Sequence record: NC_071039.1 | DNA length: 64,000 nt | Strand: one strand, 5' to 3' | In this document: positions 4,655-53,264 of the stretch, in pieces | How positions within the stretch are numbered: position 1 is the first letter of the stretch | How the letters are laid out: every line of letters starts with the position of its first letter | The notes under the pieces: model-generated | The model's database searches: none | Told to the model about the DNA's origin: nothing | The model's input: the letters and a program-made list of their open reading frames with translations, nothing else | Made by a program: the position numbers and the translations under genes

Positions 4655-4684
4655 AAATAAAAGGGGCATATGCCCCTTTTATTT
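4655..4684. terminator. bidirectional terminator (perfect palindrome)
   Basis: AAATAAAAGGGGCATATGCCCCTTTTATTT at the phoH stop. Confidence 0.85.
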
Positions 4685-5456
4685 AATTAATGTCCTTATA
4701 CATTTCTAAAATATCTTCAATCAGTGGATGACGTTTAATATCCTTTGAAGTAAATTTAATGACACTTATGTGTTTATTGCCGCCTGCTCTATCGAGTCTT
4801 TCTAAGAAATCTTTTAGTCCATTTACTTCGAAACCCCGATCGTGTTGCTCTATATCGCCAGTAACTATCATTTTACAATTCTCACCTATTCTTGAAAAAA
4901 GCATTTTAGACATGTTAGGCGTTGTATTCTGTATTTCGTCTGCTAATATAACACAATTTTTAAATGTTCTGCCTCTCATATATGCAAGGGGAGCAATTTC
5001 TATAATTTCTTCCATAAGCATTTGTTCTATTTCGACAGGGGAATAATATTCTTTAAACACATCCATTATTGGTATTACCCAAGGAGCCATTTTATCTATT
5101 AGCGTGCCTGGCAAAAAACCGTGTTCTTCGTCAACTGATACTGCTGGCCTAGTAATTACAATCTTATCGCATTTACCTTCTTTATATGCTTTAATTGCAT
5201 ACATAGATGCTAGTAATGTTTTTCCGGATCCCGCAGGACCTGTTGCAAATACAATGTGCTGTGTATCGTCTTCCAACGCGTCTACATATTCTTCTTGTGC
5301 TAAGCTTTTTGGTATTAGCTTAACTTCTTGTTTTCTTTGTATAGATCTTACTTGTTTAGTATTAGTAGACGGCTGAACAACATTGTTAGTTACTAGATGA
5401 AAGGTACTGTTAGGACCTTCGCTTGCTCGAGCTTTGCGCTTATCACGTTGTTTCAA
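4683..5456 (-). CDS. phoH: PhoH-family ATPase
   Basis: LIPKSLAQEEY, GPAGSGKT, ITRPAV, GFLPG, APLAYMRGRTF, DEIQN, GDIEQHD, RHPLI. TTG start with AGGAG SD (5465-5469). Confidence 0.95.
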   Translation of the reverse strand: MKQRDKRKARASEGPNSTFHLVTNNVVQPSTNTKQVRSIQRKQEVKLIPKSLAQEEYVDALEDDTQHIVFATGPAGSGKTLLASMYAIKAYKEGKCDKIVITRPAVSVDEEHGFLPGTLIDKMAPWVIPIMDVFKEYYSPVEIEQMLMEEIIEIAPLAYMRGRTFKNCVILADEIQNTTPNMSKMLFSRIGENCKMIVTGDIEQHDRGFEVNGLKDFLERLDRAGGNKHISVIKFTSKDIKRHPLIEDILEMYKDIN

Positions 5457-5526
5457 AAGTATGACTCCTGGTTAAAATCTTATTTTTAGTGTGATAATAT
5501 GTATAAAGATCTAATCTTTACATTGT

Positions 5527-5534
5527 TATTTATG
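5527..5534 (-). promoter_or_regulatory. candidate T4-like late promoter (CATAAATA)
   Basis: Recurrent (G/C)ATAAATA motif upstream of phoH. Confidence 0.45.
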
Positions 5535-5601
5535 TGTGTTATTATACATTAAGACTTAAGAAAAATCTACATCTAATTTTAAATATTAAGATTAATGTGT
5601 A

Positions 5602-5609
5602 GATAAATA
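5602..5609 (+). promoter_or_regulatory. candidate T4-like late promoter (GATAAATA)
   Basis: Same motif 24 nt upstream of ATG 5633. Confidence 0.5.
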
Positions 5610-5620
5610 TAATATATTAT

Positions 5621-6154
5621 TTGGATAGTAAAATGAACAAACACAATGCAGATACTGCTAGAGAGAATTTAGTTCAAATAGCAGGAAATAATAAAGTATT
5701 AGATATGCTCATAGAATTAGAAAAAACATTAGATAACTGTAATGTTTTTTCTTATGCAAATTGGAATAAAGGAGAATTAGTTGCCGGACCCTTTATTTCT
5801 AGATATTGGGTTACTACTACCTGGATGTACAATGAAAAAGATATGCCAGATCCCGATGCAGGATTGCGTTTACTAAAATACGGTTGCAAAGTAAAGTACG
5901 AAAGGGATGTTTTTTTAGAACCAAAAAAAGTAACAGGTAGACCTGACTACGAAAACCCAGCTACTAAGCAAGCAAAAATAGAAGAATTGCCTATTTGGTT
6001 AGTGACAATAACTATGCCTAGGAAATTTATAGACGAAGCAATAATAGATGGCATGCAGGATTTCTCTAACGTAGATGACATAGATCCTAGTGCAATAGCC
6101 GATGTAGAAGCAGCAGGCGAAAACGGAATAAACGATGTAGATGGAAATCTATAA
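5621..6154 (+). CDS. hypothetical phage protein
   Basis: 177 aa ORF; the ATG at 5633 is a more likely start than TTG 5621. Confidence 0.75.
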   Translation: MDSKMNKHNADTARENLVQIAGNNKVLDMLIELEKTLDNCNVFSYANWNKGELVAGPFISRYWVTTTWMYNEKDMPDPDAGLRLLKYGCKVKYERDVFLEPKKVTGRPDYENPATKQAKIEELPIWLVTITMPRKFIDEAIIDGMQDFSNVDDIDPSAIADVEAAGENGINDVDGNL

Positions 6155-6183
6155 AATTATTCCATATTATAAAGGGGTATATA

Positions 6184-6885
6184 ATGTTAGCTAGACACTC
6201 ATTAAAAGGAACCGTATTACCTATAATTTCGGTGGATGAGTATATGCCTAAATCTGGAACACAGGAAGAAGTTATAGTCATTGCATTCTATACCATTGAC
6301 GAAGACCCTGCGTTTGATTTAGACGATTTTATAGAAAAAAGTTTTATAGAAGTATTAGATGTCGATGTAAGTCCCAATCCCGACGAAAACGGAAATTATT
6401 TAGTATTTGTAGAATTAAAAAGAAAAGCAGGCTTCTTTGAAAAATTTTACAAGATTATAAAAGATGTAGAAAATGTGTCTGGAAAGCAAGACTGGTTAGT
6501 TAAAGCATATCTTTGTAACGAATTACTACCATACAATGACGAAAGACTATTAGATTATATAATATTACTAGATGACGAAGAAGCATCAATAACAGAAAGT
6601 GTAATATCTATGCTTACTGACAGCGATATATCTTCTGCTCACATAGATGATTCTAGAATATACATATCTAATTCTCATAGAACAGTAAGTTTTGAGCCAT
6701 TGTATATAGGCGAAAAAGCATTTAATAGTTTAAAACTAAATGAATGTGCTATAGAACTATCTAATGTAGATAGTAATGTTGCTTTATTATCGGCATTTTT
6801 AGGTAAAAAATGGGAAGTATATAAACTAAACGAATATATAATACTTCAACACCAATCTAAGCAACCTATTATAGCCAAATTATAA
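6184..6885 (+). CDS. hypothetical phage protein
   Basis: 233 aa ORF with AAGGGG SD. Confidence 0.75.
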
Positions 6886-6889
6886 TCAA

Positions 6890-6916
6890 AAAGCACTTAT
6901 TTTCGATAAGTGCTTT
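6890..6916 (+). terminator. hairpin / probable terminator
   Basis: AAAGCACTTAT-TTTCG-ATAAGTGCTTT immediately after the stop at 6885. Confidence 0.6.
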
Positions 6917-6923
6917 AACTATC

Positions 6924-7613
6924 ATGAAGAATTGGCAAACAATCCTTGGCGTATCTGCTAATCCCACAGAAAAACAGATAAAGACTGCATATAGAAAACT
7001 TGCATCAAAATATCATCCTGACAGAAATAAAGATAAAGATGCAGAAAACATGTTTAAACAAGTAAGGGAAGCATACGAATATGCAATAAAATGGATTTCT
7101 ATTAAAACAGAACAATACACAGATACAGTATATATTCCATTAAAATACCAAAATAAAGGCGGCAAATTCAAGACAGCTAATCATAAATTTATTATAGAAA
7201 TTCCGCCACATTTCCCTCATAATTCACAAAAAATAATAATAGTAAACAATTCTATATTATTAGTTACTGTAATATTCATACATGATACATTTTCTATAGC
7301 TCAAAATGGAATAGATGTATATGCAACTATTTCTGTAGAAAGTCTCGACATAATTATGGGCACAGAAATAATAGTTGAGCATCCGTACGGAAATAAGATA
7401 AAAGTAGGTATACCTACATCATTTGTATCTGGATCTAAAATACTAGTGAAGAATAAAGGTATTAAGAATACATATACAGTAAACAATATTTTAGAAACCA
7501 TAACAGGTCATTTGTATATAACTGTCAACATGTTCACAAAAGTTCGTTTGACTAAAAGTAGCGATACTAGTATACTACTAACGTACAAAGCAAAACCATA
7601 CACAATCTCGTAA
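6924..7613 (+). CDS. J-domain co-chaperone (DnaJ/CbpA-like, no zinc finger)
   Basis: ILGVS...[18 protein letters not shown]...[11 protein letters not shown]-domain with HPD; C-terminal DnaJ_C-like segment ([11 protein letters not shown]...TGHLYI). Confidence 0.9.
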
Positions 7614-28274: not shown

Positions 28275-30185
28275 ATGAAATTAGGAAAATTTATTCATAA
28301 CGGAAATTTACATATAAAATATAGACCGGCGCCGTTAGTCGATGTAGGTCCTGTCCTACAATATAAATTTCTAGCAAATGAACCATTAGACGAAGCAACA
28401 GAATCGATGTCAATTTCGTCTGGCACAGTTTCTATACAAAATAGTTCGATGTATACTTCTGGTAGCACAGTAAACAATTATTTCTATAGAAAGTTACCTA
28501 GTATACTTAAAAATACCAAATTTACAATAGAACTAACAATAAGGTCAGAAGGCGAAATTCCGTCTACTAGTAATATAATAGGTACATGGAATTCATCTAA
28601 CGAATTTTGGTTGTTATCTGTAATTAACAACAATTTAGTATTTCAATGGAATAATGGAACTGCCACTGCCGGTACTAGACAAGTATTTACATTTAGTAAT
28701 GTACAAGTACCTTCAGACCAAGACGTTCATTTAGCTGTATGCAGAGATGACACCATGTTATATGGATTTGTAAATGGACAACTAGCAGGTTCGTTTGAAG
28801 TGTCATTTGCAGGACATACTAATGTTGTATCGGGGTCTATATTCTCTACAAGAAGCATGGCCACCACAAATAACTATTTTAATGGATATAGAAAAAATAT
28901 TAGAATAGTAAATGACAAGGCATTATATGTTGCACCATTCACACTAGCTAGCGTAACTATGGCTGATGTAAAGCCAGACTACTATACCCCGGAAGATGCT
29001 AGCTTAGTAGTAGGTCAAATAACATGTAAACGAAATTCATTGTTCCAAGAAACTATGAATACTCCTACTTTACTACTTACAGGTTTATCTAATTCTACAA
29101 CAGGACGATTTGTAACAACTACTAATAATACTTCTGGCTTCCAATTTTCTCCTGTAACAAATTGGCAATCGGGTGATTACACAATAGAATTATATATAAA
29201 CTTATCTACAGTAGGCGCCGGCGGCGCCATACTAATAGGTCAATGGACATCTTCGGGTGGCACCGACATCGGATGGTCTATTTCTATGCAACAAAACGGA
29301 AGCGTCAGGCATTTCTATTCCACTGACGGATTATACGACCAAGCAAACGGTAACTCTGGAGTATTGCAAGCACCTAATGGTACTTTAGTATTAAACAAAG
29401 ATACCCATGTATGTGCAATGCGGAAAAATGGGGTAATAGGATTATTTGTAGACGGTGTTAGACTAGCCCAAGTAAACGAGGCAAGGCCATTATGGAATAG
29501 TCAAATACCCATTAGAAACACATGGACTGCGCCAGCAGATGGATATGCATTAGCAGAACGCTGGAATATAAGATGTATTTCTAAAGCAATGTATGATATA
29601 GACGGTTTCGTTCCGCCGGTTCGTTTACCTACATTTCCTAATTTATTAACAAATACAGGTAGTTATTCGCGCTCTGCATTGTCTGGTACAACTACTACAG
29701 CAGATACAATGGGAAATATTATACAATTTAATTCCTCCGGGCAAACATCCGGCGGTGGCTACCAAAAATATTTTATATATGGTTCTAAAAAAGTAGAAAT
29801 AATAGGAAATACCATATCTTCGGATTCAACACAACAAATGAGATATGGTTTAACAAACACAACTCCTACCACATTTGCAGAGTCAGAATCTGATTTTAAT
29901 TCCGGTACATTCCCATATGCGTATGCCGATAGAATTAACAGTGTCATTCAAATAGTTAAACAAGGTAGTGTTATAGGTAGTTTGCCTCATTCTACTGCCA
30001 ACCATACCTTTAAAATAACATATGATTTCGAAAATAATCAGTTTACTTATGAAGTTACTTCTGGCACTGCACAAGGACAATCTGTTACTACAAGTCTAGA
30101 TTCTACAATAACACAGAATACTAAGTTTGCAGTATGTGGGACCAAATCTAATATACAAATAACTTCTGTAAAAATACAACAATAA
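28275..30185 (+). CDS. LamG/concanavalin A-like lectin-domain protein
   Basis: Two FTIEL/YTIEL...HLAVCRD/HVCAMRK...FV(N/D)G segments; 636 aa. Confidence 0.7.
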   Translation: MKLGKFIHNGNLHIKYRPAPLVDVGPVLQYKFLANEPLDEATESMSISSGTVSIQNSSMYTSGSTVNNYFYRKLPSILKNTKFTIELTIRSEGEIPSTSNIIGTWNSSNEFWLLSVINNNLVFQWNNGTATAGTRQVFTFSNVQVPSDQDVHLAVCRDDTMLYGFVNGQLAGSFEVSFAGHTNVVSGSIFSTRSMATTNNYFNGYRKNIRIVNDKALYVAPFTLASVTMADVKPDYYTPEDASLVVGQITCKRNSLFQETMNTPTLLLTGLSNSTTGRFVTTTNNTSGFQFSPVTNWQSGDYTIELYINLSTVGAGGAILIGQWTSSGGTDIGWSISMQQNGSVRHFYSTDGLYDQANGNSGVLQAPNGTLVLNKDTHVCAMRKNGVIGLFVDGVRLAQVNEARPLWNSQIPIRNTWTAPADGYALAERWNIRCISKAMYDIDGFVPPVRLPTFPNLLTNTGSYSRSALSGTTTTADTMGNIIQFNSSGQTSGGGYQKYFIYGSKKVEIIGNTISSDSTQQMRYGLTNTTPTTFAESESDFNSGTFPYAYADRINSVIQIVKQGSVIGSLPHSTANHTFKITYDFENNQFTYEVTSGTAQGQSVTTSLDSTITQNTKFAVCGTKSNIQITSVKIQQ

Positions 30186-30210
30186 GTCCTTTAAATTAGG
30201 AAAAATTTCA

Positions 30211-30239
30211 TTGACTAACTCCGTTTACACTAGTATAAT
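30211..30239 (+). promoter_or_regulatory. sigma70-type promoter
   Basis: TTGACT-N17-TATAAT. Confidence 0.8.
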
Positions 30240-30265
30240 ATATGCAATGTTTAACGGAGTTAACA

Positions 30266-30541
30266 ATGACTGACATTAATCCAAATTCTCGCCACTACTC
30301 TGCTGAAGACGTCCGGCGAATTAAACAGTTAGTTTCTGAAGGCATGCAAGTCATGCAAGAAATTGAAGATTTAAAAACCGGACTAGCAGAAACAGTTAAA
30401 GCAATTGCAGAAGAAGTAAATGTTAAGCCTTCCCAGCTTAATAAAGTTATTAAAATCGCACATAAACGTTCTTTAAACGAAGAACTAGATAAGATTAACG
30501 AAGTAGAAGAGATTCTAGACGCAATTAAAGAAGGTCGTTAA
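30266..30541 (+). CDS. T4 DsbA-like / GapR-like double-stranded DNA-binding protein
   Basis: Helical pattern IKQLVSEG...IEDLK...VKAIAEEVNVKPSQLNKVIKIAHK resembles T4 DsbA. ATG 30266 with GGAG SD preferred over 30242. Confidence 0.55.
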   Translation: MTDINPNSRHYSAEDVRRIKQLVSEGMQVMQEIEDLKTGLAETVKAIAEEVNVKPSQLNKVIKIAHKRSLNEELDKINEVEEILDAIKEGR

Positions 30542-30553
30542 TATTTTCAAAAC

Positions 30554-30578
30554 AAGCCGTGCTTTTGCGCGGCTTTTT
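30554..30578 (+). terminator. intrinsic terminator
   Basis: AAGCCGTGC-TTTT-GCGCGGCTTTTT. Confidence 0.75.
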
Positions 30579-30594
30579 ATTTTGTAGGACAATT

Positions 30595-33006
30595 ATGTAC
30601 ATCGATATTTTCGAAGATAAGAAAAATGAAATACTTCTAGTTGCAGAACGATCTGCAGGCAAACGAATATACAAACAATACCCTATAGATCATACATATT
30701 ACATATTAGATGCAAACGGACCGTATAAAGATATATTCGGTAATAATGCTAAAGCCATTAAGCCATCTAGCATAAATGAAAAAATGACTCAAATGAAAAT
30801 GCTAGATTTTTCGCAAACGTGCGAAATAGACGTCAGGCCAGAATTTAGATGCTTGGAAGTAAACTATAAGAATGCACCTATGCCAAATTTGCATGTTGCA
30901 TTCTTCGATATCGAGACCGCGTTTGATCAAAAACGCGGTTATGCCGACCCGGCTGATCCTTTTAATCCCATTATATCAATATCTGTATATTTGCAATGGA
31001 TGCAGCAAATGGTTTGCTTAGCATTAGCACCGGAGACTATATTACCAGAAGATGCACAACGCATAGCATCAGAAGTAGGCGAAACAATTATATGTAAAAA
31101 TGAAAAAGAAATGCTAAGTATGTTTATTGACTTAGTAGAAGATGCAGATATTTTATCAGGTTGGAACTCAGAACGTTTCGATATTCCTTATACTTTTAAC
31201 AGAATTGTAAAATTATTAGGTAAGAATGAACTAAGAAAATTATGCCTTTGGAATCTTATGCCCAAGAAGCGCAATATTGAACAAGAAGGCGGCAGTAGTT
31301 TTGTTACATTCGAAACGTTTGGTAGAATACATTTAGATTATCTTCAATTATATAAAAAATATAATTACGAAGAACGTCATAGTTACTCGTTAGATTCTAT
31401 TTCGGAAATCGAACTAGGTGAACGAAAAGTTCCATACAACGGAACATTAGACAAACTTTATAAATATGATTTTAAAAAGTTTTTAGAATATAACATTCAG
31501 GATACTCGACTCCTAGATAAGTTAGATAGAAAATTAAAATATATAGATCTAGCTTCCACCATTGCACATAGTAATTGCATTCCTATCCCTACTGTTATGG
31601 GTGCAGTAGCTACAACCGAACAAGCAATTATAATCGAAGCACATAATAACGGCATGGTAGTGCCATCTAGGCAACGTTTTAAAAATAATGATACACTTAA
31701 AGCTGCGGGCGGTTGGGTAGCATATCCTAAAGTAGGACTGCATAGAGATATTGGCTCCAGTGACTTAAATTCTCTGTATCCTTCTGTGTTAAGGGCACTA
31801 AACATGAGCCCAGAAACTATTGTAGGACAAGTTCGGTTAACACTTACTAACCCTGCAATCGAAGAATGGTGTGCAAAAGGCGGAACAAAACATACATTTG
31901 CTGCATGGTGGAACGATAGGTTTACCACTTTAGAAATGGAATATGTGTTAAACAAAGACAGGGGTACTATATTAACGTTAGATATGGCAGACGGGCGTTC
32001 GTTTGAACTGTCAGGTGCCGAAATATACGAATTAGTATTCAACAGTGGTCAGAATTGGCATATCAGTGCTAACGGAACTATATTTACACAAGACAGAGCA
32101 GGTGTAATTCCGTTACTACTTACAAGATGGTATGCAGAACGTAAAGGGATGCAGAAAATTGCATCAGATTATAATTCTTTAGATAAAGAACACCATAGCG
32201 ACAAAACTGTATTTTTAGAAGATAAATCAGTATTAGATGGAATATGCGTAGGCGAAGTTGAATTAGCAGACCATTATAATATTAATGATGTATATGTTGC
32301 AGCTACATTAAAAAATCTTGTCGAATCAAAAAATTGGCAAGAAGTAGCAATATATATGAAAAAGTATGGACTAGAAGTGTCGTCTGACAATTCAATTGTT
32401 ATGTCAGATTCCCATATGCAAAACGAATATTACGAATATTGGGATAAAGCCCAGTTAGTTCGTAAAATTGGATTAAACAGCTTATATGGCGGACTACTTA
32501 ACGAACATTCTAGATTCTACGATAAAAGACTAGGACAGAGTACTACACTTACTGGGCGCTGTATCACTAGACATATGGCTTCTAAAACAAACGAAATGTT
32601 TACTGGCATTTACGATCATGAAGGCGATTGTGTAATTTATGGCGATACAGATAGTGTAGATGGATCAACTATCCTAAATACTTCTCTAGGTAAAATAACT
32701 ATAGAAGAATTGTTTAATGTGTCTGACAAGCATGTAGTTCATGCAGAAAAAGAATTTGCTTCGAATGAAGATGTTATGGTAATGTCGTGGGACAATTCTG
32801 CAAAACAACCATATATGGGGCATATAAACTATGTGTACCGCCACGAAGTAGAAAAAGAGCTATTCGAAATAGAAGACAACAGCGGAAATAAAGTTATAGT
32901 AACCGAAGATCATTCTATTATGGTTATACGTAACGCAGAACTTCTAGAGGTTAAACCCACAGATTTAACAGATAGTGATATAATATTATCTATTGTATAT
33001 GAATAA
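30595..33006 (+). CDS. family B DNA polymerase, N-terminal half, fused to split-intein N part
   Basis: Exo I FFDIET, Exo II SGWNSERFDIPY, Exo III YNIQD, motif A DLNSLYPS, motif B KIGLNSLYG, motif C YGDTD, then the sequence turns into an intein N-half and stops. ATG 30595 (TAGGA SD) preferred over GTG 30559. Confidence 0.95.
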   Translation: MYIDIFEDKKNEILLVAERSAGKRIYKQYPIDHTYYILDANGPYKDIFGNNAKAIKPSSINEKMTQMKMLDFSQTCEIDVRPEFRCLEVNYKNAPMPNLHVAFFDIETAFDQKRGYADPADPFNPIISISVYLQWMQQMVCLALAPETILPEDAQRIASEVGETIICKNEKEMLSMFIDLVEDADILSGWNSERFDIPYTFNRIVKLLGKNELRKLCLWNLMPKKRNIEQEGGSSFVTFETFGRIHLDYLQLYKKYNYEERHSYSLDSISEIELGERKVPYNGTLDKLYKYDFKKFLEYNIQDTRLLDKLDRKLKYIDLASTIAHSNCIPIPTVMGAVATTEQAIIIEAHNNGMVVPSRQRFKNNDTLKAAGGWVAYPKVGLHRDIGSSDLNSLYPSVLRALNMSPETIVGQVRLTLTNPAIEEWCAKGGTKHTFAAWWNDRFTTLEMEYVLNKDRGTILTLDMADGRSFELSGAEIYELVFNSGQNWHISANGTIFTQDRAGVIPLLLTRWYAERKGMQKIASDYNSLDKEHHSDKTVFLEDKSVLDGICVGEVELADHYNINDVYVAATLKNLVESKNWQEVAIYMKKYGLEVSSDNSIVMSDSHMQNEYYEYWDKAQLVRKIGLNSLYGGLLNEHSRFYDKRLGQSTTLTGRCITRHMASKTNEMFTGIYDHEGDCVIYGDTDSVDGSTILNTSLGKITIEELFNVSDKHVVHAEKEFASNEDVMVMSWDNSAKQPYMGHINYVYRHEVEKELFEIEDNSGNKVIVTEDHSIMVIRNAELLEVKPTDLTDSDIILSIVYE
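32653..33003 (+). mobile_element. split intein N-fragment (117 aa)
   Basis: Starts SVDGSTIL directly after YGDTD (block A), KITIEELF, and block B VIVTEDHSIMV, followed by the stop codon. Confidence 0.9.
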
Positions 33007-34681
33007 AGAATATTATCAGTCATACGCAAAAGAATTAAAAAAGAATAATAAGAAAGAATACAATCGTATTCTTTCTTTGTATGAGCCTGTATTCGATAAA
33101 TGGGTTGCATTTAAGTATTATATAAAAGGAATATCGCCGCCTGTATGTAAAGAATGTGGTAATAGAATAACTGTTTCGGCAAAACAAGCAGAATATCACA
33201 CAGAATGCAAATATAATAAACACAAGTATTCATTTGATAAATTTATAAAATGCATAGATGATGACCAATACATATATTGTGTGTGGAATGGATATATTTC
33301 AACATCTGACAATATAACATACAGATGCACTAAACACGGCATAATTGTTCAAAAACTTAGTTCTAGACTAAAAGGTCACAAATGCCAAAAATGTTCAGCT
33401 GAGCGTAAAGTAAGTCTAGATAACTTTAATAACTGGAAAACGCAGTGTTCTAAAATACATAATAATTTTTATGATTATTCTGTATCTACTGATTTTACAT
33501 TCTTAACAAAAGATGTATCTATTAAATGTCCAATACATGGAATATTTAAACAAAAAGCAAACGTCCATCAATCAGGTCACGGTTGTAAACAATGCTCGTT
33601 CGAAGCCATCGGTCATAGATTATCATATGACACAGATTCTTTTATAGAAAGAAGTAACAATGTTCATAATAATTTTTATGACTATACCAAAACTATATAC
33701 ACTAACATTAGAGATAAAGTTATTATAACATGTCCGATACACGGCGACTTTAATCAGATAGCATATTATCATACTGCCGGACACGGTTGTCAGAAATGCG
33801 ATTTAGATAAAGTAGCAGAAACTACCTATAGATCTAAGGCAGAAATAGAAATATTTGATTTAGTTAAATCTTATTGCTCAGATACAATTCATTCATACAA
33901 TAAATTCGGGTTCGAATTAGACATATATGTTCCTAGTAAAAATCTTGCAATAGAATATAATGGACTTTATTGGCATTCTTCTAAACATATAGAAACTGAT
34001 CAAAAGTATAAAACATACCATCTTGATAAAACCACTACATGTGAACATAATAATATCCAATTATTACACATTTTCGACAACGAATGGCATACTAAAAAAG
34101 ATATATGGATCTCGGTAATAAAAAATAAACTAGGTTTATCTAATAAAATATATGCAAGAAAAACAGAAATTAAAGAAGTTAATTTCGATGATGCAAAACA
34201 ATTCGCCGAAACGAATCATTTGCAGGGTCATGCACAATTTCGGCATGCATACGGACTGTATTATTTAGATCAATTAGTTTCTTTATTAACAATTGCAAAG
34301 CCCAGGTTTAATAAAAATGCAAACTGGGAAATAGTAAGATTTTGTAACCTAAATAACATAAGTGTAATAGGTGGGTTTTCTAAATTATTAAAGGTAGTTT
34401 CTTGTAATTTTACAGGCAAGATAGTATCATATGCAAATAGGCGCTGGTCCGCAGGAAACGTTTATGAAAAAAACGGATTTGCCAAAACTTCAATAATAGC
34501 TCCTGGATTTTATTATACTGACTTCAAAGATACATATAATAGATTATCTTTCTCTAAAGACAAGGCAAAAGTTAAATTAAAAAATTATAATAATTCAGTT
34601 AGCGTAGTAGAAAATATTTACGCAAACGGATATGGCAGGATTTGGGATTCAGGAAATATTGTTTATACAAAGGATTTATAA
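32999..34681 (+). CDS. free-standing homing-type endonuclease (Zn-finger repeats + Vsr/EDxHD-like nuclease + GNAT-like tail)
   Basis: CxxHG...GHxCxxC repeats, SKAEIEI...ELDIYVP...AIEYNGLYWH, then IYARK...HLQG...WEIVRFC...GGFSKLL...SYANRRWSAGNVY. ATG 32999 overlaps the end of polB-N (track start TTG 32993). Confidence 0.85.
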   Translation: MNKEYYQSYAKELKKNNKKEYNRILSLYEPVFDKWVAFKYYIKGISPPVCKECGNRITVSAKQAEYHTECKYNKHKYSFDKFIKCIDDDQYIYCVWNGYISTSDNITYRCTKHGIIVQKLSSRLKGHKCQKCSAERKVSLDNFNNWKTQCSKIHNNFYDYSVSTDFTFLTKDVSIKCPIHGIFKQKANVHQSGHGCKQCSFEAIGHRLSYDTDSFIERSNNVHNNFYDYTKTIYTNIRDKVIITCPIHGDFNQIAYYHTAGHGCQKCDLDKVAETTYRSKAEIEIFDLVKSYCSDTIHSYNKFGFELDIYVPSKNLAIEYNGLYWHSSKHIETDQKYKTYHLDKTTTCEHNNIQLLHIFDNEWHTKKDIWISVIKNKLGLSNKIYARKTEIKEVNFDDAKQFAETNHLQGHAQFRHAYGLYYLDQLVSLLTIAKPRFNKNANWEIVRFCNLNNISVIGGFSKLLKVVSCNFTGKIVSYANRRWSAGNVYEKNGFAKTSIIAPGFYYTDFKDTYNRLSFSKDKAKVKLKNYNNSVSVVENIYANGYGRIWDSGNIVYTKDL

Positions 34682-34936
34682 ATGCATAATCTAACAAAAC
34701 ACCTTTTAGGTGTATTTTCTGCAAAAACAGAAGACGAAGAATATAACAGTGCAAAAAGAGCGTTAGAAGAATTAAACAAAAATATAAAAGAAAGAGATCC
34801 TAATAAATTTAATGTGTCTTTAGGAAAGGTATCTAAAGTAACTAATTTAGGAAAAAAGAAACAATATGTATACGATATAGGGATGAAAAATCCCGATAAT
34901 CCGTATTTCTTTGGAAATAATATATTAGTTCACAAT
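34682..34936 (+). mobile_element. split intein C-fragment (85 aa)
   Basis: KVSKVTNLG...YVYDIGM (block F) and FFGNNILVHN (block G), followed by S-CYF, which restores polymerase motif C (YGDTD|SCYF). Confidence 0.9.
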
Positions 34937-35821
34937 TCTTGCTATTTTACTGCATGGCCTGCAGTAAAAGACCTTGTAGAATCTGGTGAAATGGAATGGG
35001 ATAAAGATACTGTCATTAAATTATACGACAACGTTTCGTCACAAGTAAGTGATACATTTCCAGAATTTTTAAAACAAACATTTAACGTTCCATATAAAAA
35101 CTCAGAAGGTGTTATTAAGTCAGGTAGGGAAATTGTAGCTACTTCTGGTCTTTTTATTAAAAAGAAACGTTATGCTGCTATGATGTATGATAAAGAAGGT
35201 ACTAGATACGACGACGAAAACAGCCCAGGAAAAGTAAAAGCAATGGGTTTAGACTTACGTCGGTCAGATACGCCTAAATTTGTCCAAACATTCCTTATGG
35301 AAATTCTAGTTATGGTGCTAACACATAAAACAGAAGATGAAGTAATAGAATATATTAGAGAATTTAAAAAAGAATTTAATAAAATGAAACCGTGGGAAAA
35401 GGGAATGCCAAAAGGCGTCAACGGTATCAGTACATATGAAGATAAATTAGAAGAACACATGAATAAAAAGTTAGCAGGAAGAGAGTCTAGAATCACTGTC
35501 CCCGGTCACGTGTCTGCTGCGATGAATTGGAATAAACTAAAGCTTATCAATAAAGACCTACATACTCCTAAAATCTCAGATGGTCAAAAATGTGTTGTTT
35601 GTTATTTAAAAGAAACAGCAGACAATCATTTCACTAGTATAGCATATCCTGTAGATGAATTGCACTTACCAGAATGGTTTACGTCTTTGCCATTTGATGA
35701 AGATTTAATGAGAGAAAAAGTAGTAGATAACAAAGTTAAGAACCTTTTAGGTATTCTAAAATGGGATTTTAGTAAAACAGAAGAAGCTGCTGCACACTTC
35801 GATTCGCTGTTTGGTTGGTAA
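34682..35821 (+). CDS. split-intein C part fused to family B DNA polymerase, C-terminal half
   Basis: After HN: SCYF, KKKRYA, KAMGLDLRRSDTP, ITVPGHVSA. Own SD AAGGA at 34670-34674. Confidence 0.95.
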   Translation: MHNLTKHLLGVFSAKTEDEEYNSAKRALEELNKNIKERDPNKFNVSLGKVSKVTNLGKKKQYVYDIGMKNPDNPYFFGNNILVHNSCYFTAWPAVKDLVESGEMEWDKDTVIKLYDNVSSQVSDTFPEFLKQTFNVPYKNSEGVIKSGREIVATSGLFIKKKRYAAMMYDKEGTRYDDENSPGKVKAMGLDLRRSDTPKFVQTFLMEILVMVLTHKTEDEVIEYIREFKKEFNKMKPWEKGMPKGVNGISTYEDKLEEHMNKKLAGRESRITVPGHVSAAMNWNKLKLINKDLHTPKISDGQKCVVCYLKETADNHFTSIAYPVDELHLPEWFTSLPFDEDLMREKVVDNKVKNLLGILKWDFSKTEEAAAHFDSLFGW

Positions 35822-35843
35822 TCAAAAACTATACTTTGTACAC

Positions 35844-35872
35844 TTGCATTATGAAAATATTTAATGTATAAT
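35844..35872 (+). promoter_or_regulatory. sigma70-type promoter
   Basis: TTGCAT-N17-TATAAT. Confidence 0.7.
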
Positions 35873-35901
35873 TCACACACATCTTAGGAGAATAATAAGT
35901 A

Positions 35902-36648
35902 ATGATTGTAGACAATTTAAAGGACGTAGTTCGTAACACTCACGGTTTGGGTTTTATAGATACTGTTAAAATTATCGGTTCTGTAAATGAAACTAAATTA
36001 GAAGCTATGTCAACTAATAAAACTGTAGTTATGTACGGTTCTTTAAAAAAATCCATTCCGGGGTTAGACGATACTGTAGGTTTAAGTAGAATGTCTGTAC
36101 TGAGCGGTATGTTAAATTTCCCACCATATTCGGGAGATGATGCCGAAGTTTCTATTAAGAAACAAGAACGTAACGGTGAAGAAATTCCTGCAGAAATTGT
36201 ATTTTCTTCTTCGACGGGTCATAAATCGTCGTACCGGTTTATGGCACGAGATACAGTAGACGAAGTGCTAAAAGTTCCGCCGTTTAGAGGAGTTGTGTGG
36301 GATATAGTTATTCAACCTACTAAGCAAGCGATGAAAGATCTTCAATATTTTAGTGCTGTATTGGGTTCTTATGAATCTAACTTTTTAGTTAAAGTAACAG
36401 ACGGTGTTTTAGAATTCCACATAGGTACCGGTGCTACTAGCGACCGTACTGTTGTACCATTTGCAAAAGATGTCAAGAGCACATTACGCAATAACTGGTC
36501 CTGGCCATTACCGGAAGTGTTAGCAATTCTAAAAAACGCAGATAGTGGCAAATGTACTATGTCTATTTCTAGTCAGGGTGCATTGATGATCGAACTCGAC
36601 ACTGGGCTAATAGAAGTTCAATATATTCTTCCTGCAAAAAGTGCATAA
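35902..36648 (+). CDS. probable sliding clamp (gp45-like)
   Basis: 248 aa, clamp-sized, two-domain alpha/beta pattern, C-terminal YILPA, directly after polB; the clamp loader is also in the window. Confidence 0.6.
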   Translation: MIVDNLKDVVRNTHGLGFIDTVKIIGSVNETKLEAMSTNKTVVMYGSLKKSIPGLDDTVGLSRMSVLSGMLNFPPYSGDDAEVSIKKQERNGEEIPAEIVFSSSTGHKSSYRFMARDTVDEVLKVPPFRGVVWDIVIQPTKQAMKDLQYFSAVLGSYESNFLVKVTDGVLEFHIGTGATSDRTVVPFAKDVKSTLRNNWSWPLPEVLAILKNADSGKCTMSISSQGALMIELDTGLIEVQYILPAKSA

Positions 36649-36651
36649 ATA

Positions 36652-36912
36652 ATGATCTTACCTGCTCGTAAATTAGTTAAATTGCAATACTATATTGTAC
36701 AGGAATCTTACAATTCTATAGGTAGACCAATAACTACAGTTACTCTTGTATACAGAAAATATATATTTTTTACAAAGAAAGAAAAAATTATATTCGAGCG
36801 TATTAAGAAAACAGACAATTTGTATTATAAACAAGAATCCGAAAAAGAGTTGTGTGAACAACTAAGTGTATGGGCAAAAAGAACATTAAAAATATATGAT
36901 ATAGGGCAATAA
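36652..36912 (+). CDS. hypothetical protein
   Basis: 86 aa ORF followed by the hairpin ATAGGGCAAT-A-ATTGCCCTAT (36901-36921). Confidence 0.55.
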   Translation: MILPARKLVKLQYYIVQESYNSIGRPITTVTLVYRKYIFFTKKEKIIFERIKKTDNLYYKQESEKELCEQLSVWAKRTLKIYDIGQ

Positions 36913-36984
36913 TTGCCCTATATTTTTCATTTATAAATGAATTAACCTAAATACATATGCACTAAAGAATAATTAAGGAATATA

Positions 36985-38607
36985 ATGAAAAATTTATCAA
37001 ACAGTCAAAAAGATTATGCGATCTATTTGCCTGCAATTAGTGGGTTTTACACAAAACAATTAGACAGTTCTATTAACGATCCGTCTACAAGAAAAATACC
37101 TAGCTTTCCTAATGGATATAATACTCTTAATTTTTTAGATCCATCTAGCGATACTTTCTTTTACGGGTATGGGTTATATTCTGCAGGCCATGCAGAACTG
37201 TCTTTATCTAGAACTGATGCAAAAGAATGGATGATCCAAGCCAGGGACAAAACACAAACAACAGTTATTGCAGATTCAGGTGGTTTCCAGGTAGCTACTG
37301 GTGTAATTAAATTAAACTGGGATGATTTTAAAGGAGCTAGCGGAGATAAAATAAGAAATGAAATTTTAAAATGGTGTGAACATACCGCCGACTGGTCAAT
37401 GACACTAGATGTTCCTGCGTTTGCTGCTACTCCTCCGTACAGTTCAAAAACCGGTCTTAATAAATTCGAAGATACATTAGATTATTCTCTTCATAATTTA
37501 CATTATTACATGAAGAACAGAACTCCTGGCGCAACTAAATTCCTTAGTGTATTATCAGGATCAGATGTAGATACATCTAAAATTTGGTACGACAACGTAA
37601 AAGCATTTAGTGACCCTGCTAAAGTAGTAGAAATGGGATATCCAGCTAGTCATACACTCGAAGGGTATGCATTTGCTGGTATAAACATGAGAAATATGTA
37701 TTGTGCTCTTTCTCGATTCTTAGATCTAATAGATGATAATATTATTTCAGATAAAAACTGGATACACTTTCTTGGACTAGGAAGGACTGATTGGGCTTGT
37801 TTCTTAACATCTATTCAGCGAAATATAAGAAAACATTATAATCCCAATATTAACATAAGTTTTGACGCAGCTTCTCCGTTTGTTTCTGTGGCATACGGTC
37901 TTGCATATAACTATAATTATTTTAATCCCAAACGGTGGGGATATAATATGGATTCTGCCCCAGACAGTAGAGAGTTTAGTGATAAAGATATTCCTATGCC
38001 GTTTATGAGTCCTATTATGGAAAAATTATCATTAAAAGACATATGTCCATATCACAATGGTTATGGTATAATAAATGGTGTTAAAAATGCAAACTTTACA
38101 AAAGAAGATGTAGAAACTGCTCTTAAAGAAGGAAAAGATGCAGAATACGTGCCGCCGAGCGCAAATAAAAATGGTAAAGTAGGTAAAACCAGTTGGGATT
38201 CACTTAGTTACTTATTAATAATGAATCATAATGTTTACAATCATATAGCTGCAATCCAAGAATCTAATAGATTAGTCGATATAGAACGGTTGCGAGTTAA
38301 AGTAGATTACCGAGATTGGACTAGAGATAAAAAGAAAGGTACTATAGAAGTAAGTAATCACGTCCCTAGTTCGATTTTATATTTTGACCATTTCGTAGAA
38401 GTATTGCTAGATCCGAGTACTCCTAATAAGCGACAATTACTAGAAGATTATAGACCTATGCTAGACAGCATTAGTTTCGGTAATTATAACTCAAACTCAT
38501 TTAATAGTCTTTTTGATGTAGATGCTACTGCAATTGAAGATGAAAATAAGTTTGCAGACATAAACGACGAAAAACTAACTGAATTAGAACAAGGATTAGA
38601 CAATTAA
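36985..38607 (+). CDS. tRNA-guanine transglycosylase-fold protein, probable DNA 7-deazaguanine transglycosylase (DpdA-like)
   Basis: IADSGGFQ, MTLDVP, HFLGLG and SFDAASP motifs of the TGT fold; 540 aa; clustered with QueE-like and QueD-like genes. Confidence 0.82.
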   Translation: MKNLSNSQKDYAIYLPAISGFYTKQLDSSINDPSTRKIPSFPNGYNTLNFLDPSSDTFFYGYGLYSAGHAELSLSRTDAKEWMIQARDKTQTTVIADSGGFQVATGVIKLNWDDFKGASGDKIRNEILKWCEHTADWSMTLDVPAFAATPPYSSKTGLNKFEDTLDYSLHNLHYYMKNRTPGATKFLSVLSGSDVDTSKIWYDNVKAFSDPAKVVEMGYPASHTLEGYAFAGINMRNMYCALSRFLDLIDDNIISDKNWIHFLGLGRTDWACFLTSIQRNIRKHYNPNINISFDAASPFVSVAYGLAYNYNYFNPKRWGYNMDSAPDSREFSDKDIPMPFMSPIMEKLSLKDICPYHNGYGIINGVKNANFTKEDVETALKEGKDAEYVPPSANKNGKVGKTSWDSLSYLLIMNHNVYNHIAAIQESNRLVDIERLRVKVDYRDWTRDKKKGTIEVSNHVPSSILYFDHFVEVLLDPSTPNKRQLLEDYRPMLDSISFGNYNSNSFNSLFDVDATAIEDENKFADINDEKLTELEQGLDN

Positions 38608-50178: not shown

Positions 50179-50528
50179 TCGTCAGCGAGATTATATATTC
50201 TATTTTCATAGCTGCATTAATAACAGTTATGACTATACTATATATAAGTCTCAGAATAATAACATGTAAGATATTAAATAAGTCATTAAAGATTTCAGCT
50301 AATGTAATTATATATGGTACCTCTAATATAGAATATGTATATATTCCTGAAATAAAATATAAATTTCTTTCTTTTAAAATAACACATTCTGGTTTAGTTA
50401 TGTTTGACAAAGAGTTTGGATTTAGGACACTAAACGATGCTATAAATGCATTAAATATGTATGTAGACACCGATATTATAAAAATAGTATATAAAAAGGT
50501 ACCCACATTTTATACTTGGCACGAATAA
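50175..50528 (+). CDS. membrane-anchored hypothetical protein
   Basis: N-terminal transmembrane segment; overlaps both neighbours. Confidence 0.55.
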   Translation: MIVSEIIYSIFIAALITVMTILYISLRIITCKILNKSLKISANVIIYGTSNIEYVYIPEIKYKFLSFKITHSGLVMFDKEFGFRTLNDAINALNMYVDTDIIKIVYKKVPTFYTWHE

Positions 50529-52024
50529 TGGATAATTTTGATATAGAATTAAAAGAACTCATAAAAAATACAAATCCTAACGCATTAGGAAATGTAGTAA
50601 AAAGTAAAAAAGAAATATATGAGGAATTAGTTCGTCGAACTAATTCCTTTCTTCGTGACGACGTTTCTGTAACAGAAAGGATTCATATATACTTAAATCC
50701 GGCTGATAATGTTTACTGTAAGTATGATAACAAACGGACACTAAAGCGAAATAAAGATACAAAACAAACCCAATACGGATTTTGCGGAAATAAAAGTAAA
50801 TGTAAATGTCATATGGAATGGTCTTTAAAAAATCATCCAGGCATGACACAATCCGGAAAAGAAAGTATGAAAACAAAGAGGATAAAAACTTGGATAGAAA
50901 AATACGGTGTCGATAATCCATCTAAGTCAAAAGATATTATTGCAAAACAGCAATTAAGTAAAAAACATATAAAGCCAGATCATAGAGCTATAAAGGAGTT
51001 GGGATATAAAAAAGTAGTAGAACGACTTTCTAATATACTCACCCCTACGTTTAGTATAGACGAGTACGAAGGGTGCTTTAGAAAAAATGTGTATGACTGG
51101 GTATGCAATGCATGCGGAAATATAGTTATCGGACACGTAGATTATGGGTCTACTCCGAGGTGCAATGTTTGTAATCCTATAACAAAGTCTGCCGGCGAGA
51201 ATGAAATATCTAACTATATAGTATCGCTAGGATTTGATGTGATTAACAATGACCGAACTATATTATCTAACAAAGAATTAGATATAGTAATTAAAGGTAC
51301 AAACATAGCAATAGAATATAATGGTTGTTATTGGCATTCTACAAAACACAGAAAAAAATCATATCATGTAGATAAATTTATAGAATGCAGAGATAAAGGA
51401 ATAAAGTTAATACAAATTTTAGATGTAGATTGGATATCAAAACAAGACATAATAAAATCAAGGTTAAAATCTATTTTAGGTTGTAGTGATAGAATATATG
51501 CAAGGAATACAACTATAAAAGAAATAACATTTAACGAATCTTTAACTTTTTTAGAAGAAACTCACATCCAAGGTTCTTGTCAATCATCTGTAAGACTAGG
51601 TCTATACGACAGTGAGAATATGTTAGTAGCAGTAATGACATTTGGGAAATCTAGATATACAAAAGAGGAATATGAATTACTTAGATATGCTAGCAAAAAT
51701 ACTGTTGTAGGAGGAGCCAGCAAACTTCTTAAATATTTCATAAAAACATATTCCCCTAAATCTATTATTACATATGCAGATAGGTGTTGGTCAGATGGAA
51801 ATTTATATAAACAACTCGGGTTTACAAATGTAACCAAGAATGACAGAAATACAGGATATTGGTATATAAAAGACAACATAAAATATCATAGATCTAATTT
51901 CATAAAATCTAAGATTTCTAATAAAAATAATTTACATCTAAGCGAATCAGAAATAATGGATAGTTTAGGTTATTTAAAATATTACGATTGCGGCAATTAC
52001 AAATATACATTGCAGGTACGCTAG
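50528..52024 (+). CDS. free-standing homing-type endonuclease (Vsr/EDxHD-like nuclease + GNAT-like tail), homologue of 32999-34681
   Basis: Cys clusters, KYGVDNPSKS, SAGENEI...ELDIVI...AIEYNGCYWH, IYARN...HIQG...YELLRYA...GGASKLL...TYADRCWSDGNLY. ATG 50528 via TAATG overlap (track TTG 50516). Confidence 0.85.
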   Translation: MDNFDIELKELIKNTNPNALGNVVKSKKEIYEELVRRTNSFLRDDVSVTERIHIYLNPADNVYCKYDNKRTLKRNKDTKQTQYGFCGNKSKCKCHMEWSLKNHPGMTQSGKESMKTKRIKTWIEKYGVDNPSKSKDIIAKQQLSKKHIKPDHRAIKELGYKKVVERLSNILTPTFSIDEYEGCFRKNVYDWVCNACGNIVIGHVDYGSTPRCNVCNPITKSAGENEISNYIVSLGFDVINNDRTILSNKELDIVIKGTNIAIEYNGCYWHSTKHRKKSYHVDKFIECRDKGIKLIQILDVDWISKQDIIKSRLKSILGCSDRIYARNTTIKEITFNESLTFLEETHIQGSCQSSVRLGLYDSENMLVAVMTFGKSRYTKEEYELLRYASKNTVVGGASKLLKYFIKTYSPKSIITYADRCWSDGNLYKQLGFTNVTKNDRNTGYWYIKDNIKYHRSNFIKSKISNKNNLHLSESEIMDSLGYLKYYDCGNYKYTLQVR

Positions 52025-52079: not shown

Positions 52080-53264
52080 ATGTCCACTAAAACCCTAGAA
52101 GAACGCATCATCCGCGCCCGTGTTCAGTTGCTGTTGAACCATCCGTTTTTCGGGACCTTGGCGCTGCGCCTTAAACTAGTCGAGGCGAACGACTGGTGCC
52201 CTACTGCCGGTACTGATGGACGCCATCTTTATTATAATACCAAGTTCCTCGAAGACTTGGACGATAAGGAACTTATCTTCCTCATCGGTCATGAGGTAAT
52301 GCACGTCGTCTACGACCACATGGGACGGCGTGGCAGCAGAGAGCCTAAACTGTGGAACTGTGCTGCCGACTTTGTTATCAACCTCGAATTGCACGATATG
52401 AAAATCGGCAAGCTTATCCACCGTCCGGGTACTTGCGAGCCGTGCTTTGATGAAAAGTACCGCGGAATGTCCGCTGACCAGATCTATGAACTAATTAAGA
52501 AAGATCCGTCACTAAAAGATAAAGATAGCTTCGACGTTCACCTCGAACCCGGTGGTGCCGGGAATGAAGACGGCGATGCTTCTGGCAAATCCGGTCCTAT
52601 CCCTATGTCTGCAGATGAGCAAGCTGCTCTTCGGGACGAGATCACTGAAGCTGTTCTTCAGGCTGCTAAAGCTGCTGGTGTCGGCAACACTCCGGCAGGT
52701 GTGCGTCAGATGATCAGTGACATCACTGAACCTAAACTAGATTGGCGCGAATTGCTAAACCAGACTATTCCGTCGCACATTAAATCCGACTATATGTGGA
52801 CTCGTCCGTCGCGGAAGAGTTGGGGAACTGGTGCGACTCTGCCGGGTCAGATTGTTGATGACAAAATCGATGTTATCCTGGCACTAGACGCCTCTGGTTC
52901 GATTAGCTCTTCTCAGCTAAGGGATTTCTTAGGAGAAGTGTTAGGAATTATGGAACAGTTTAGTGACTTTTCCATACAAGTGCTAACGTTTGATACTAGA
53001 GTGTATGAATTCCGAAAATATACTCCCGACAATGCAGACGAAATCTATGAGTATCCCCTTAAAGGCGGCGGCGGCACCGATTTTGTGGCTGTGTTTAACT
53101 TCCTTAAAGATACGCTCACTGAACCGCCGCATCAGTTAGTATTCTTCACTGACATGGAAGTGTATGACTACGGCGATCCTAACTATTGCGATACTGTGTT
53201 TATAAACCACGGTCGCAAAGGTGTAACTGCACCGTTTGGCATCACCATCGACTACGACGAATAA
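52080..53264 (+). CDS. zincin-like metallopeptidase domain + VWA domain protein (DUF2201-like), MoxR partner
   Basis: AGTDG...YN..F, HEVMH (HExxH), WNCAADFVIN, VWA MIDAS LDASGS, TFDT, GGGGTDF, FFTDM. GC-rich like the AAA gene. Confidence 0.87.
   Translation: MSTKTLEERIIRARVQLLLNHPFFGTLALRLKLVEANDWCPTAGTDGRHLYYNTKFLEDLDDKELIFLIGHEVMHVVYDHMGRRGSREPKLWNCAADFVINLELHDMKIGKLIHRPGTCEPCFDEKYRGMSADQIYELIKKDPSLKDKDSFDVHLEPGGAGNEDGDASGKSGPIPMSADEQAALRDEITEAVLQAAKAAGVGNTPAGVRQMISDITEPKLDWRELLNQTIPSHIKSDYMWTRPSRKSWGTGATLPGQIVDDKIDVILALDASGSISSSQLRDFLGEVLGIMEQFSDFSIQVLTFDTRVYEFRKYTPDNADEIYEYPLKGGGGTDFVAVFNFLKDTLTEPPHQLVFFTDMEVYDYGDPNYCDTVFINHGRKGVTAPFGITIDYDE

Follow-up and report, generated by a model that had tools for sequence, protein, structure and literature searches.

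The stretch of DNA analysed here (the window; 64,000 nucleotides of sequence record NC_071039.1) carries a family-B DNA polymerase gene (polB) that is broken in two, with a third gene lying between the halves. The DNA is that of the Pseudomonas jumbo phage vB_PaeM_PA5oct (PA5oct): positions 30500-35900 match MK797984.1 at 100% by megablast, and a coordinate in that record equals the window coordinate plus 186000. The PA5oct record labels the three open reading frames (ORFs), in order, 'DNA polymerase', 'putative Hef-like homing endonuclease' and 'DNA polymerase', and no intein is annotated at polB in the GenBank record. The middle ORF overlaps the end of the first polymerase ORF (polB-N) by 8 nt (ATGAATAA) and is in the +1 frame relative to it; no obvious Shine-Dalgarno (SD) sequence was seen at its start. 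It is in one frame with the second polymerase ORF (polB-C), with only a TAA between them. A preliminary description of the window, made from the sequence alone, had proposed a polB-N stop at 33006, an ORF of ~560 residues and a polB-C with its own SD, and the ORF map and the AAGGA upstream of polB-C agree with this layout. Its junctions, YGDTD followed by a 117-aa N-terminal intein half (IntN) with Ser1 and TEDH, and an 85-aa C-terminal half (IntC) ending in LVHN/SCYF, were confirmed by translation. The features are collected in Table 1.

Table 1. Coordinates of the polB locus of PA5oct (window positions), its neighbours, and the loci of relatives (positions in their own records)
Feature	Position	Strand	Basis or remark
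polB-N	ATG 30595 to TAA 33004-33006	+	ORF map
PolB N-extein, 686 aa	30595-32652	+	exonuclease domain and polymerase motifs to ..VIYGDTD; Pfam DNA_pol_B_exo1, DNA_pol_B
IntN, 117 aa (SVDGSTIL...TEDH...SIVYE), and stop TAA 33004-33006	32653-33006	+	
IntN Ser1	32653-32655	+	
IntN NX motif R63-H64 (YVYRH)	H64 at 32842-32844	+	
IntN block B T84-E85-D86-H87	32902-32913	+	
Middle ORF (endonuclease), 560/562 aa	ATG 32999 (TTG 32993) to 34681	+	
Perfect 12-bp-stem palindrome (AAGAAAGAATACGATTGTATTCTTTCTT)	33050-33077		50 nt within endonuclease ORF
DUF723-type zinc ribbons, three repeats (C..HG.F.Q....H..G.GC..C), residues ~100-270	33296-33808	+	Pfam DUF723
Vsr-like / EDxHD nuclease domain, residues ~272-365	33812-34093	+	family profile vs 3R3P
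GNAT-fold, phage-Mu-Mom-like domain, residues ~380-560	34136-34678	+	AlphaFold2 (AF2) model and Foldseek
SD AAGGA for polB-C	34670-34674	+	7 nt before ATG, within 3' end of endonuclease ORF
polB-C	34682-35821	+	ATG abuts endonuclease stop (TAAATG)
IntC, 85 aa, ending ..YVYDIGMKNPDNPYFFGNNILVHN (LVHN)	34682-34936	+	
IntC N-terminal extension, residues 1-42 (MHNLTKHLL...)	34682-34807	+	
IntC core, residues 43-85	34808-34936	+	lysine-rich strand, block F V63-Y64-D65, block G H84-N85
PolB C-extein, 294 aa and stop, starting SCYF	34937-35821	+	Pfam DNA_pol_B, PHROG 1918/262
Ser+1	34937-34939	+	motif C completed by SCYF
DsbA-like transcription-regulator gene	30242-30541		upstream of polB-N
Terminator-like hairpin and T-run	30554-30575	+	between DsbA-like gene and polB-N start
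~248-aa protein, PHROG 12062	35902-36648		downstream of polB-C; 'structural protein' by mass spectrometry in PA5oct record
~520-540-aa protein without family match	36985-38607		downstream of ~248-aa gene
SCTP-2 (L006)	3703-6972		YGD^TDS intein
KP13-7 (L003, OP617745)	2194-6957		YGD^TDS intein
L011	2889-8176		YGD^TDS intein
L010	3957-7990		polB in three pieces; intein halves on adjoining ORFs
L015	4483-8017		intein halves on adjoining ORFs
L016	4204-8122		polB in three pieces
Atu_ph07 (L007)	3919-6888		polB split at different site

The insertion point is motif C of the polymerase (YGDTD/S..HN/SCYF, abbreviated DTD^S). The N-extein, which matches PHROG 262 'DNA polymerase' through polB-N with E 9.8e-143, ends with the motif C aspartates. 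Within the intein the split falls at the homing-endonuclease insertion point (after block N4, before C2/F), with the halves on separate ORFs: IntN ends in ..DIILSIVYE, the IntC core begins ahead of the strand that precedes VYD, and the two can be aligned to contiguous relatives. Neither half contains a cysteine, the sole nearby one being extein residue +2. Only residues 43-85 of IntC are equivalent to a canonical IntC. Residues 1-42 match the inter-lobe linker of contiguous relatives of 189-202 aa (P0153, P0172, P0182), and many split relatives keep this extension as an h-LT-x-LL helix; it is missing from IntC of the type found in phage Aes123.

Intein halves and exteins were searched as separate pieces, never fused. 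A search with intein profiles had been suggested in the preliminary description, and IntN scores above the cut-offs of both Pfam Intein_splicing (PF14890; 37.0 bits, cut-off 35.8, E 3.7e-9) and NCBIfam TIGR01445 intein_Nterm (31.4 bits, cut-off 24.5). IntC matches positions 100-155 of the Pfam profile at 22.2 bits, below the cut-off, with E 1.3e-4. The best match of IntN among solved structures is 9HTH, the PolB1 intein of Aes123 (E 8.6e-12), followed by the archaeal TFIIB, PI-PkoII and RadA inteins; IntC matches the PolB16 intein 8CPO (E 0.0045) and 9HTH (E 0.11). The Aes123 PolB1 intein, from T4-like Aeromonas phages, is naturally split into 120 + 39 aa, has no cysteine, is preceded by Asp-1 and trans-splices in vitro.

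An alignment was made of 18 sequences, comprising PA5oct, Klebsiella phage KP13-7, nine metagenomic split loci, Aes123, Tenacibaculum phage PTm1 and five contiguous relatives. Ser1, the NX histidine, the T..H of block B, a KP pair, the VYD of block F and the terminal asparagine are invariant in all 18, and the penultimate histidine is present in 17. The residue before the NX histidine is Arg or Lys in every sequence, a signature specific to Ser1 inteins (Hoffmann et al. 2023, PMC10189870). PA5oct has every conserved position (S1, R63-H64 and T84/H87 in IntN; D65, H84 and N85 in IntC), and the pair displays all of the features of class-1 'cysteine-less' Ser1/Ser+1 inteins, namely the nucleophiles, T-x-x-H, the NX and F/G residues and the lack of cysteine.

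The whole region occurs end to end in nine further Wroclawvirus genomes with 98.3-99.1% identity by megablast (ten more records, one of which is the RefSeq copy of PA5oct), and all three ORFs are intact in each of the seven Wroclawvirus genomes that were compared codon by codon. The concern raised in the preliminary description that the stops might be assembly errors is answered by these seven genomes, in which the ORF structure is identical; an assembly artefact is excluded by the 11 independently sequenced Wroclawvirus matches (98.3-100% identity), the seven intact codon-level comparisons and many metagenomic contigs with a like arrangement. Variable codons among the seven genomes were counted as synonymous-only or amino-acid-changing. 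The counts are 60 and 9 in the N-extein, 17 and 4 in IntN (I/V, N/S, A/T and D/E, all conservative), 1 and 1 in IntC, 24 and 0 in the C-extein, and 47 and 26 in the endonuclease. Purifying selection thus acts on the polymerase and on the intein and, less strictly, on the endonuclease; together with the intact ORFs, this speaks against a pseudogene or an element in decay.

The protein encoded between the halves has full-length matches to PHROG 559/3339 and more than 5000 homologues, and DUF723 is the sole Pfam family detected in it. An alignment of 47 members of the family contains three to four zinc-ribbon repeats, followed by invariant S279, E282, D308, E319, H326 and H341 and then by a conserved C-terminal domain; a conserved ..V.GGFSKLLK.. 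stretch is also seen. The invariant zinc-ribbon columns are C110 H113 C129 C132, C177 H180 C196 C199 and C245 H248 C264 C267. These ribbons are presumably DNA-binding, and DUF723 in phage homing endonucleases has been treated by Barth et al. 2023. A perfect palindrome near the start of the ORF is possibly an expression-control hairpin; hairpins near endonuclease starts in fractured genes were described by Dassa et al. 2009.

The profile of the 47 members matches the homing endonuclease I-Bth0305I (3R3P) with E 1.5e-6 at profile positions 271-363. The profile was required for this match, as a single-sequence search of the PDB with the whole endonuclease gave only a spurious TPR match. The EDxHD motif residues of I-Bth0305I are E170, D196, N208, H213 and D222, and Hef-type phage endonucleases have been assigned to the same EDxHD homing family (Taylor et al. 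2011, PMC3239194). In the HMM alignment the first four of these residues align with E282, D308, N321 and H326 of the PA5oct protein, which are invariant or conserved. The free-standing Vsr-like (EDxHD) endonuclease of the preliminary description is supported by the homologous nuclease domain. In the composite motif the E, D, N and H columns agree, and in the last column the HMM alignment places the invariant H341, His rather than Asp, opposite D222. The PA5oct protein further differs from I-Bth0305I in having DUF723 zinc ribbons instead of NUMODs, and an additional Mom/GNAT-like domain. No HNH model of Pfam (E<=0.1) or NCBIfam matched it, and the HNH identity given to orf154 of the sister phage MIJ3 and to PHROG 559 is rejected in favour of a Vsr-like nuclease domain.

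The AF2 model of the endonuclease has a pLDDT of 92.5. Its best Foldseek match is Mom of phage Mu (8BV8; E 3.5e-6, probability 1.0, target TM 0.52-0.55), followed by many GNAT acetyltransferases, and covers the C-terminal ~180 residues; a profile match of this domain to 2BSW has E 0.025. With the full model, the Vsr domain was not among the top 50 Foldseek matches. Because the GNAT domain dominates this search, the nuclease assignment rests on the profile match. Mom domains fused to restriction-endonuclease (REase)-fold nucleases occur in group 2 jumbo phages and have been read as a restriction-plus-modification pair (Iyer et al. 2021); no mention of a Mom-REase fusion within a split intein was found.

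A stand-alone paralogue of the endonuclease lies elsewhere in the window (50516-52024, + strand; 502 aa, PHROG 3339). It is 37.5% identical over residues 272-557 (E 5.6e-44), with nuclease and Mom/GNAT-like domains alike, and its N-terminal part differs from that of the polB endonuclease. Its neighbours are small membrane-protein-like ORFs and a 394-aa ORF (52080-53264; PHROG 1314).

A protein search with PolB-C, using a length window that leaves out full-length polymerases, gave 2341 matches, of which the best 120 metagenomic homologues were classified. These include 84 split C-halves, 7 contiguous inteins at DTD^S and 25 intein-less proteins; the 84 split C-halves have an IntC of 42-124 aa and junctions of the HN/S (74) or HN/TDS (10) type. 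A relative with an intact polB, of the kind that the preliminary description had proposed to look for, is phage K64-1. In a quick FastTree tree of the C-exteins, which is indicative only, the four allele states are interleaved and at least 33 changes are required, and some identical exteins are found both with and without the intein. Three tblastn matches that seemed to reach IntC (Yen9-04, Vibrio 2.275.O and ph0011) were rejected as contiguous intein-less polymerases with an intact YGDTDSVYF.

The fetched metagenomic contigs have the same synteny as PA5oct (DsbA-like gene, polB, ~248-aa protein, ~520-aa protein). What varies is the slot between the intein halves. An endonuclease of the PA5oct type (535-579 aa) fills it in L009, L011, L012 and L014, and a Vsr endonuclease of the Aes123 type (~290-340 aa) in L008, L013, L025 and KP13-7; a 196-aa ORF of another kind is present in L016, and the slot is empty in L010 and L015. 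Such varying occupancy is the pattern expected of homing endonucleases. In Atu_ph07 the differently split polB has neither intein nor endonuclease. Within the genus Alcyoneusvirus, KP13-7 has a fractured polB, in which an N part of 842 aa with an IntN of 124 aa and a C part of 404 aa with an IntC of 122 aa enclose an Aes123-type Vsr endonuclease of 325 aa (all three ORFs are annotated as 'hypothetical protein'), while K64-1 (L027) has a contiguous 1000-aa polymerase.

A sharp identity boundary is seen between the split L025 and the intein-less L026. The two are 99.8% identical over a 1988-bp stretch whose first base is that of the first C-extein codon. Identity is only 79% in the ~190 bp ahead of DTD and returns to 100% farther upstream. 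The polB of L026 is itself split ~130 codons upstream by a different endonuclease of 291 aa, which combines a NUMOD3-like N-terminal part with a Vsr-like LVELDGEFWH motif. This mosaic is the pattern that would be expected from exchange of a nuclease-driven cassette.

Homologous inteins are also found two codons upstream, at YGD^TDS with Thr+1, in Salicola phage SCTP-2, KP13-7, L011 and nine other metagenomic alleles; in PA5oct and most others the site is YGDTD^S with Ser+1. On the extein tree the site type switches back and forth between close relatives. Since neighbours of opposite site type differ in their IntC sequences (for example P0226 and P0230), two sub-lineages at adjacent sites are at least as likely as repeated sliding.

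The net charge of PA5oct IntN is -14 and that of IntC +4, with +5 on the core's first strand. The counts in the preliminary description are exact (IntN, 23 D/E and 9 K/R; final 45 residues of IntC, 7 K and 2 D), and the charge complementarity that it took as typical of trans-splicing pairs is present in PA5oct. Complementarity is not diagnostic, however, and was rejected as a marker of a split intein: the contiguous relatives P0187 and P0153 have a PA5oct-like pattern, the charges (IntN/IntC) are reversed in the split Aes123 (+8/-11) and PTm1 (+8/-14), and those of the split L015 (-1/-10) and L010 (-10/-2) are not complementary. The polarity opposite to that of Aes123 and PTm1 suggests that halves of the PA5oct type may be naturally orthogonal to the CL/CLm tools, which derive from Aes123.

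The element is already known, both specifically and as a kind. In Imam et al. 2019 (PMC6892783), the split intein of MIJ3 is described block by block, as A (SVDGSTILNTSL), N2, B (NKVIVTEDHSIMV), N4, F (VYDIGMKNPDNPYFF) and G (GNNILVHNS), and compared with the mini-intein of SCTP-2; the block sequences published there are those in the PA5oct window. The region is 98.8% identical to that of MIJ3 in DNA, with 99.1% protein identity in IntN and 100% in PolB-C, and the two are the same element. A difference lies in the middle ORF, called HNH in that paper and containing DUF723, EDxHD/Vsr-like and Mom/GNAT-like parts here. That its site is offset by two codons from the one in SCTP-2 is not remarked on in the passages of the paper that were consulted. 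The SCTP-2 intein is clearly of the same lineage (INYIYRH, VIVTEDHSIM, YVYDVGMKN..FFGNNIL), but it is contiguous (163 aa), has no endonuclease, and differs in having the YGD^TDS site, Thr+1 and a penultimate Lys in place of His.

As a kind, the DTD^S cysteine-less split PolB family includes Aes123 PolB1 (work of Mootz and Pietrokovski), CP21 PolB1, LCGC14 PolB2, GOM-OPS-1 PolB2 and PolB16, and has been studied biochemically. The record of Aes123 (JN377899) annotates gp43B1 as 'includes putative N-intein', then a 'putative VSR endonuclease', and gp43B2 as 'includes putative C-intein', and PTm1 has the same gene order. PA5oct shares with Aes123 the PolB DTD^S site, Ser1/Ser+1, Asp-1, the NX histidine, the absence of cysteine, the split at the endonuclease position, the Vsr-type endonuclease gene between the halves and a comparable IntN length (120 aa in Aes123, 117 aa in PA5oct). 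The two differ in sequence (~39% identity) and in the reversed charge polarity; the 39-aa IntC of Aes123 has no 42-aa extension, its 353-aa endonuclease consists of helical repeats and a C-terminal Vsr domain without DUF723 or GNAT, and its polB is split once more upstream (gp43A/gp43B1). CP21 PolB1, LCGC14 PolB2 and GOM-OPS-1 PolB2 have DTD/S junctions and trans-splice in vitro (2025, PMC12707363); they differ from PA5oct in their shorter IntC (39-46 aa) and in their sources, a Campylobacter phage and marine sediment metagenomes. The signatures YVYRHKVSK, EYV.DI and PYFFGN.ILVHN are common to PA5oct and LCGC14, and PA5oct IntN is ~38-42% identical to those of LCGC14, Aes123 and CP21, an approximate figure as the LCGC14 and CP21 sequences were taken from a supplement by optical character recognition.

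Dassa et al. 2009 defined both the layout known as a 'fractured gene' and the family of Vsr-like endonucleases; the host genes listed there are gp41, NrdA, NrdJ, IMPDH, DnaE, ligase and terminase, and PolB is not one of them. The polB of PA5oct has this fractured-gene layout, and resembles those genes in its charge-segregated halves and in the break between motifs N4 and C2. Most inteins of the fractured genes in that set use cysteine. The novelty of a 'new Ser/Ser split-intein pair', claimed in the preliminary description, does not stand, as the MIJ3 element was published in 2019 and the cysteine-less Ser1/Ser+1 DTD^S family is established.

We propose that the PA5oct locus is a functional trans-splicing split intein within a mobile fractured-gene cassette, with a probability of roughly 0.88. 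The reading of polB as a fractured gene, in which motif C is interrupted by a class-1 intein that is naturally split and the product is assembled by trans-splicing, is well supported by homology to validated relatives and by residue conservation; we infer that the PA5oct pair itself splices and that its endonuclease cuts polB. The family-B polymerase is encoded as two polypeptides, each with half of a cysteine-less class-1 intein. The acidic IntN and the lysine-rich IntC core would capture each other and fold into a single HINT domain, in which an N-to-O acyl shift at Ser1, aided by T84/H87 of block B and by H64 of the NX motif, would be followed by attack of Ser+1 on the resulting ester, by cyclization of IntC Asn85, aided by His84, and by an O-to-N shift to yield a 980-aa polymerase with an intact YGDTDSCYF. 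The middle ORF would be the mobility engine, carrying the whole IntN-endonuclease-IntC cassette into those polB alleles of co-infecting relatives that lack it. Homing has indirect support in relatives, from the presence/absence polymorphism and from the abrupt change of identity at the splice junction. The preliminary description had the replicative polymerase assembled only by trans-splicing, as may be the case; the 'only' needs qualification, since a second, minimal split Pol III alpha is reported in group 2.2 jumbo phages, including Atu_ph07, Lak and PTm1 (Iyer et al. 2021).

Several observations weigh against this proposal. Neither a ligated protein nor a peptide spanning the junction nor in vivo evidence was found for the PA5oct or MIJ3 pair, and the PA5oct omics paper does not mention polymerase, endonuclease or intein. 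In the intein, the block F histidine common to many inteins is missing from PA5oct (..NPDNPYFF..), as it is from several relatives, and the 42-aa N-terminal extension makes IntC twice the usual length. In the endonuclease, the last EDxHD aspartate aligns with the histidine described above. Finally, the cassette is fixed in all 11 of the Wroclawvirus matches, so current homing is not visible there.

The middle ORF could instead be mainly a restriction/modification-like weapon, its Mom-like domain marking the phage's own DNA and its REase fold attacking host or superinfecting DNA, with an incidental position in the intein. The Mom/GNAT-like C-terminal domain, the proposal of this role for the Mom-REase fusions of jumbo phages by Iyer et al. 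2021, the existence of a stand-alone paralogue with nuclease and GNAT modules, and purifying selection on the gene in a clade where the cassette has reached fixation are all consistent with such a role. This reading is harder to reconcile with the same ORF family at exactly this IntN/IntC position of polB in the diverged L009, L011, L012 and L014, with the different Vsr-type endonuclease, or none, in the slot at other loci, and with the placement of Hef-type phage endonucleases in the EDxHD homing family. We therefore consider it doubtful that the ORF is mainly a weapon, but weapon and homing roles are not mutually exclusive. The two could be combined in a self-immunizing homing endonuclease, in which the Mom-like GNAT domain modifies adenines of the phage's own DNA and the EDxHD nuclease cuts only the unmodified polB of co-infecting relatives. 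If true, the cassette would serve for homing and for exclusion alike, and purifying selection despite fixation would be accounted for. Separately, the intein lineage may have moved several times between YGD^TDS and YGDTD^S, and such a move would be a rare documented intein site shift. Taken together, these two readings are speculative and rather unlikely.

It is most improbable that the intein halves of PA5oct no longer splice and serve as a non-covalent dimerization module holding two polymerase subunits together. Split enzymes without inteins have precedent in the split gp43 of the T4-like phages 44RR/25 and in the split NrdA of Aeh1, which assembles via interaction domains (cited in Dassa 2009), and splits of polB at other sites without an intein are tolerated in Atu_ph07, L010, L016 and L026. 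However, PA5oct keeps all of the splicing-chemistry residues that are conserved across the 18 relatives, the IntN substitutions among the seven genomes are few and conservative, and homologues splice efficiently; because the break is inside motif C, an unspliced HINT domain of ~200 aa would occupy the catalytic centre. It is scarcely credible that the break is undone at the level of nucleic acid, by an intron, recoding or readthrough, or that it stems from an assembly error, the true product being a contiguous polymerase or maxi-intein. If the single TAA that separates the endonuclease ORF from polB-C were read through, an endonuclease-IntC-PolB fusion would result, and group I introns can be present in T4-like polB genes (Dassa 2009). 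However, no group I or II intron was found by Rfam cmscan (29500-37000, both strands, E<=1), which leads us to reject RNA splicing. The frames of polB-N and the endonuclease ORF differ and the shared frame of the latter with polB-C is absent in L011, which leads us to reject a conserved readthrough or frameshift fusion. The break is flanked by complete intein halves in an ORF structure that is identical in the seven genomes checked, and 11 genomes match over the whole region.

The Rfam output consisted of only weak leader/sRNA matches (Leu_leader) at the upstream terminator, which are explained by the terminator-like hairpin between the DsbA-like gene and polB-N. A GTG at 30559 falls inside the same hairpin, and for this reason the ATG in Table 1 is favoured as the polB-N start. 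A scan for sigma-70-type promoters gave 39 sites, compared with 30.9 +/- 6.0 in shuffled sequences, and no inference is made from it.

As the underlying biology is established, the remaining value of the locus is practical and incremental. PA5oct, MIJ3 and nine further cultured phages provide a natively cysteine-free and typically split intein with a polarity opposite to that of the CL/CLm tools, and a pair of the PA5oct type is a reasonable candidate for orthogonal cysteine-less ligation. The analysis also exposes gaps in annotation, namely the PA5oct GenBank record without an intein and the endonuclease mislabelled as HNH in related records. The environmental relatives form a large set and span split alleles with two endonuclease types, split alleles without an endonuclease, contiguous alleles, empty alleles and two adjacent sites, and could support study of the origin and decay of fractured genes.

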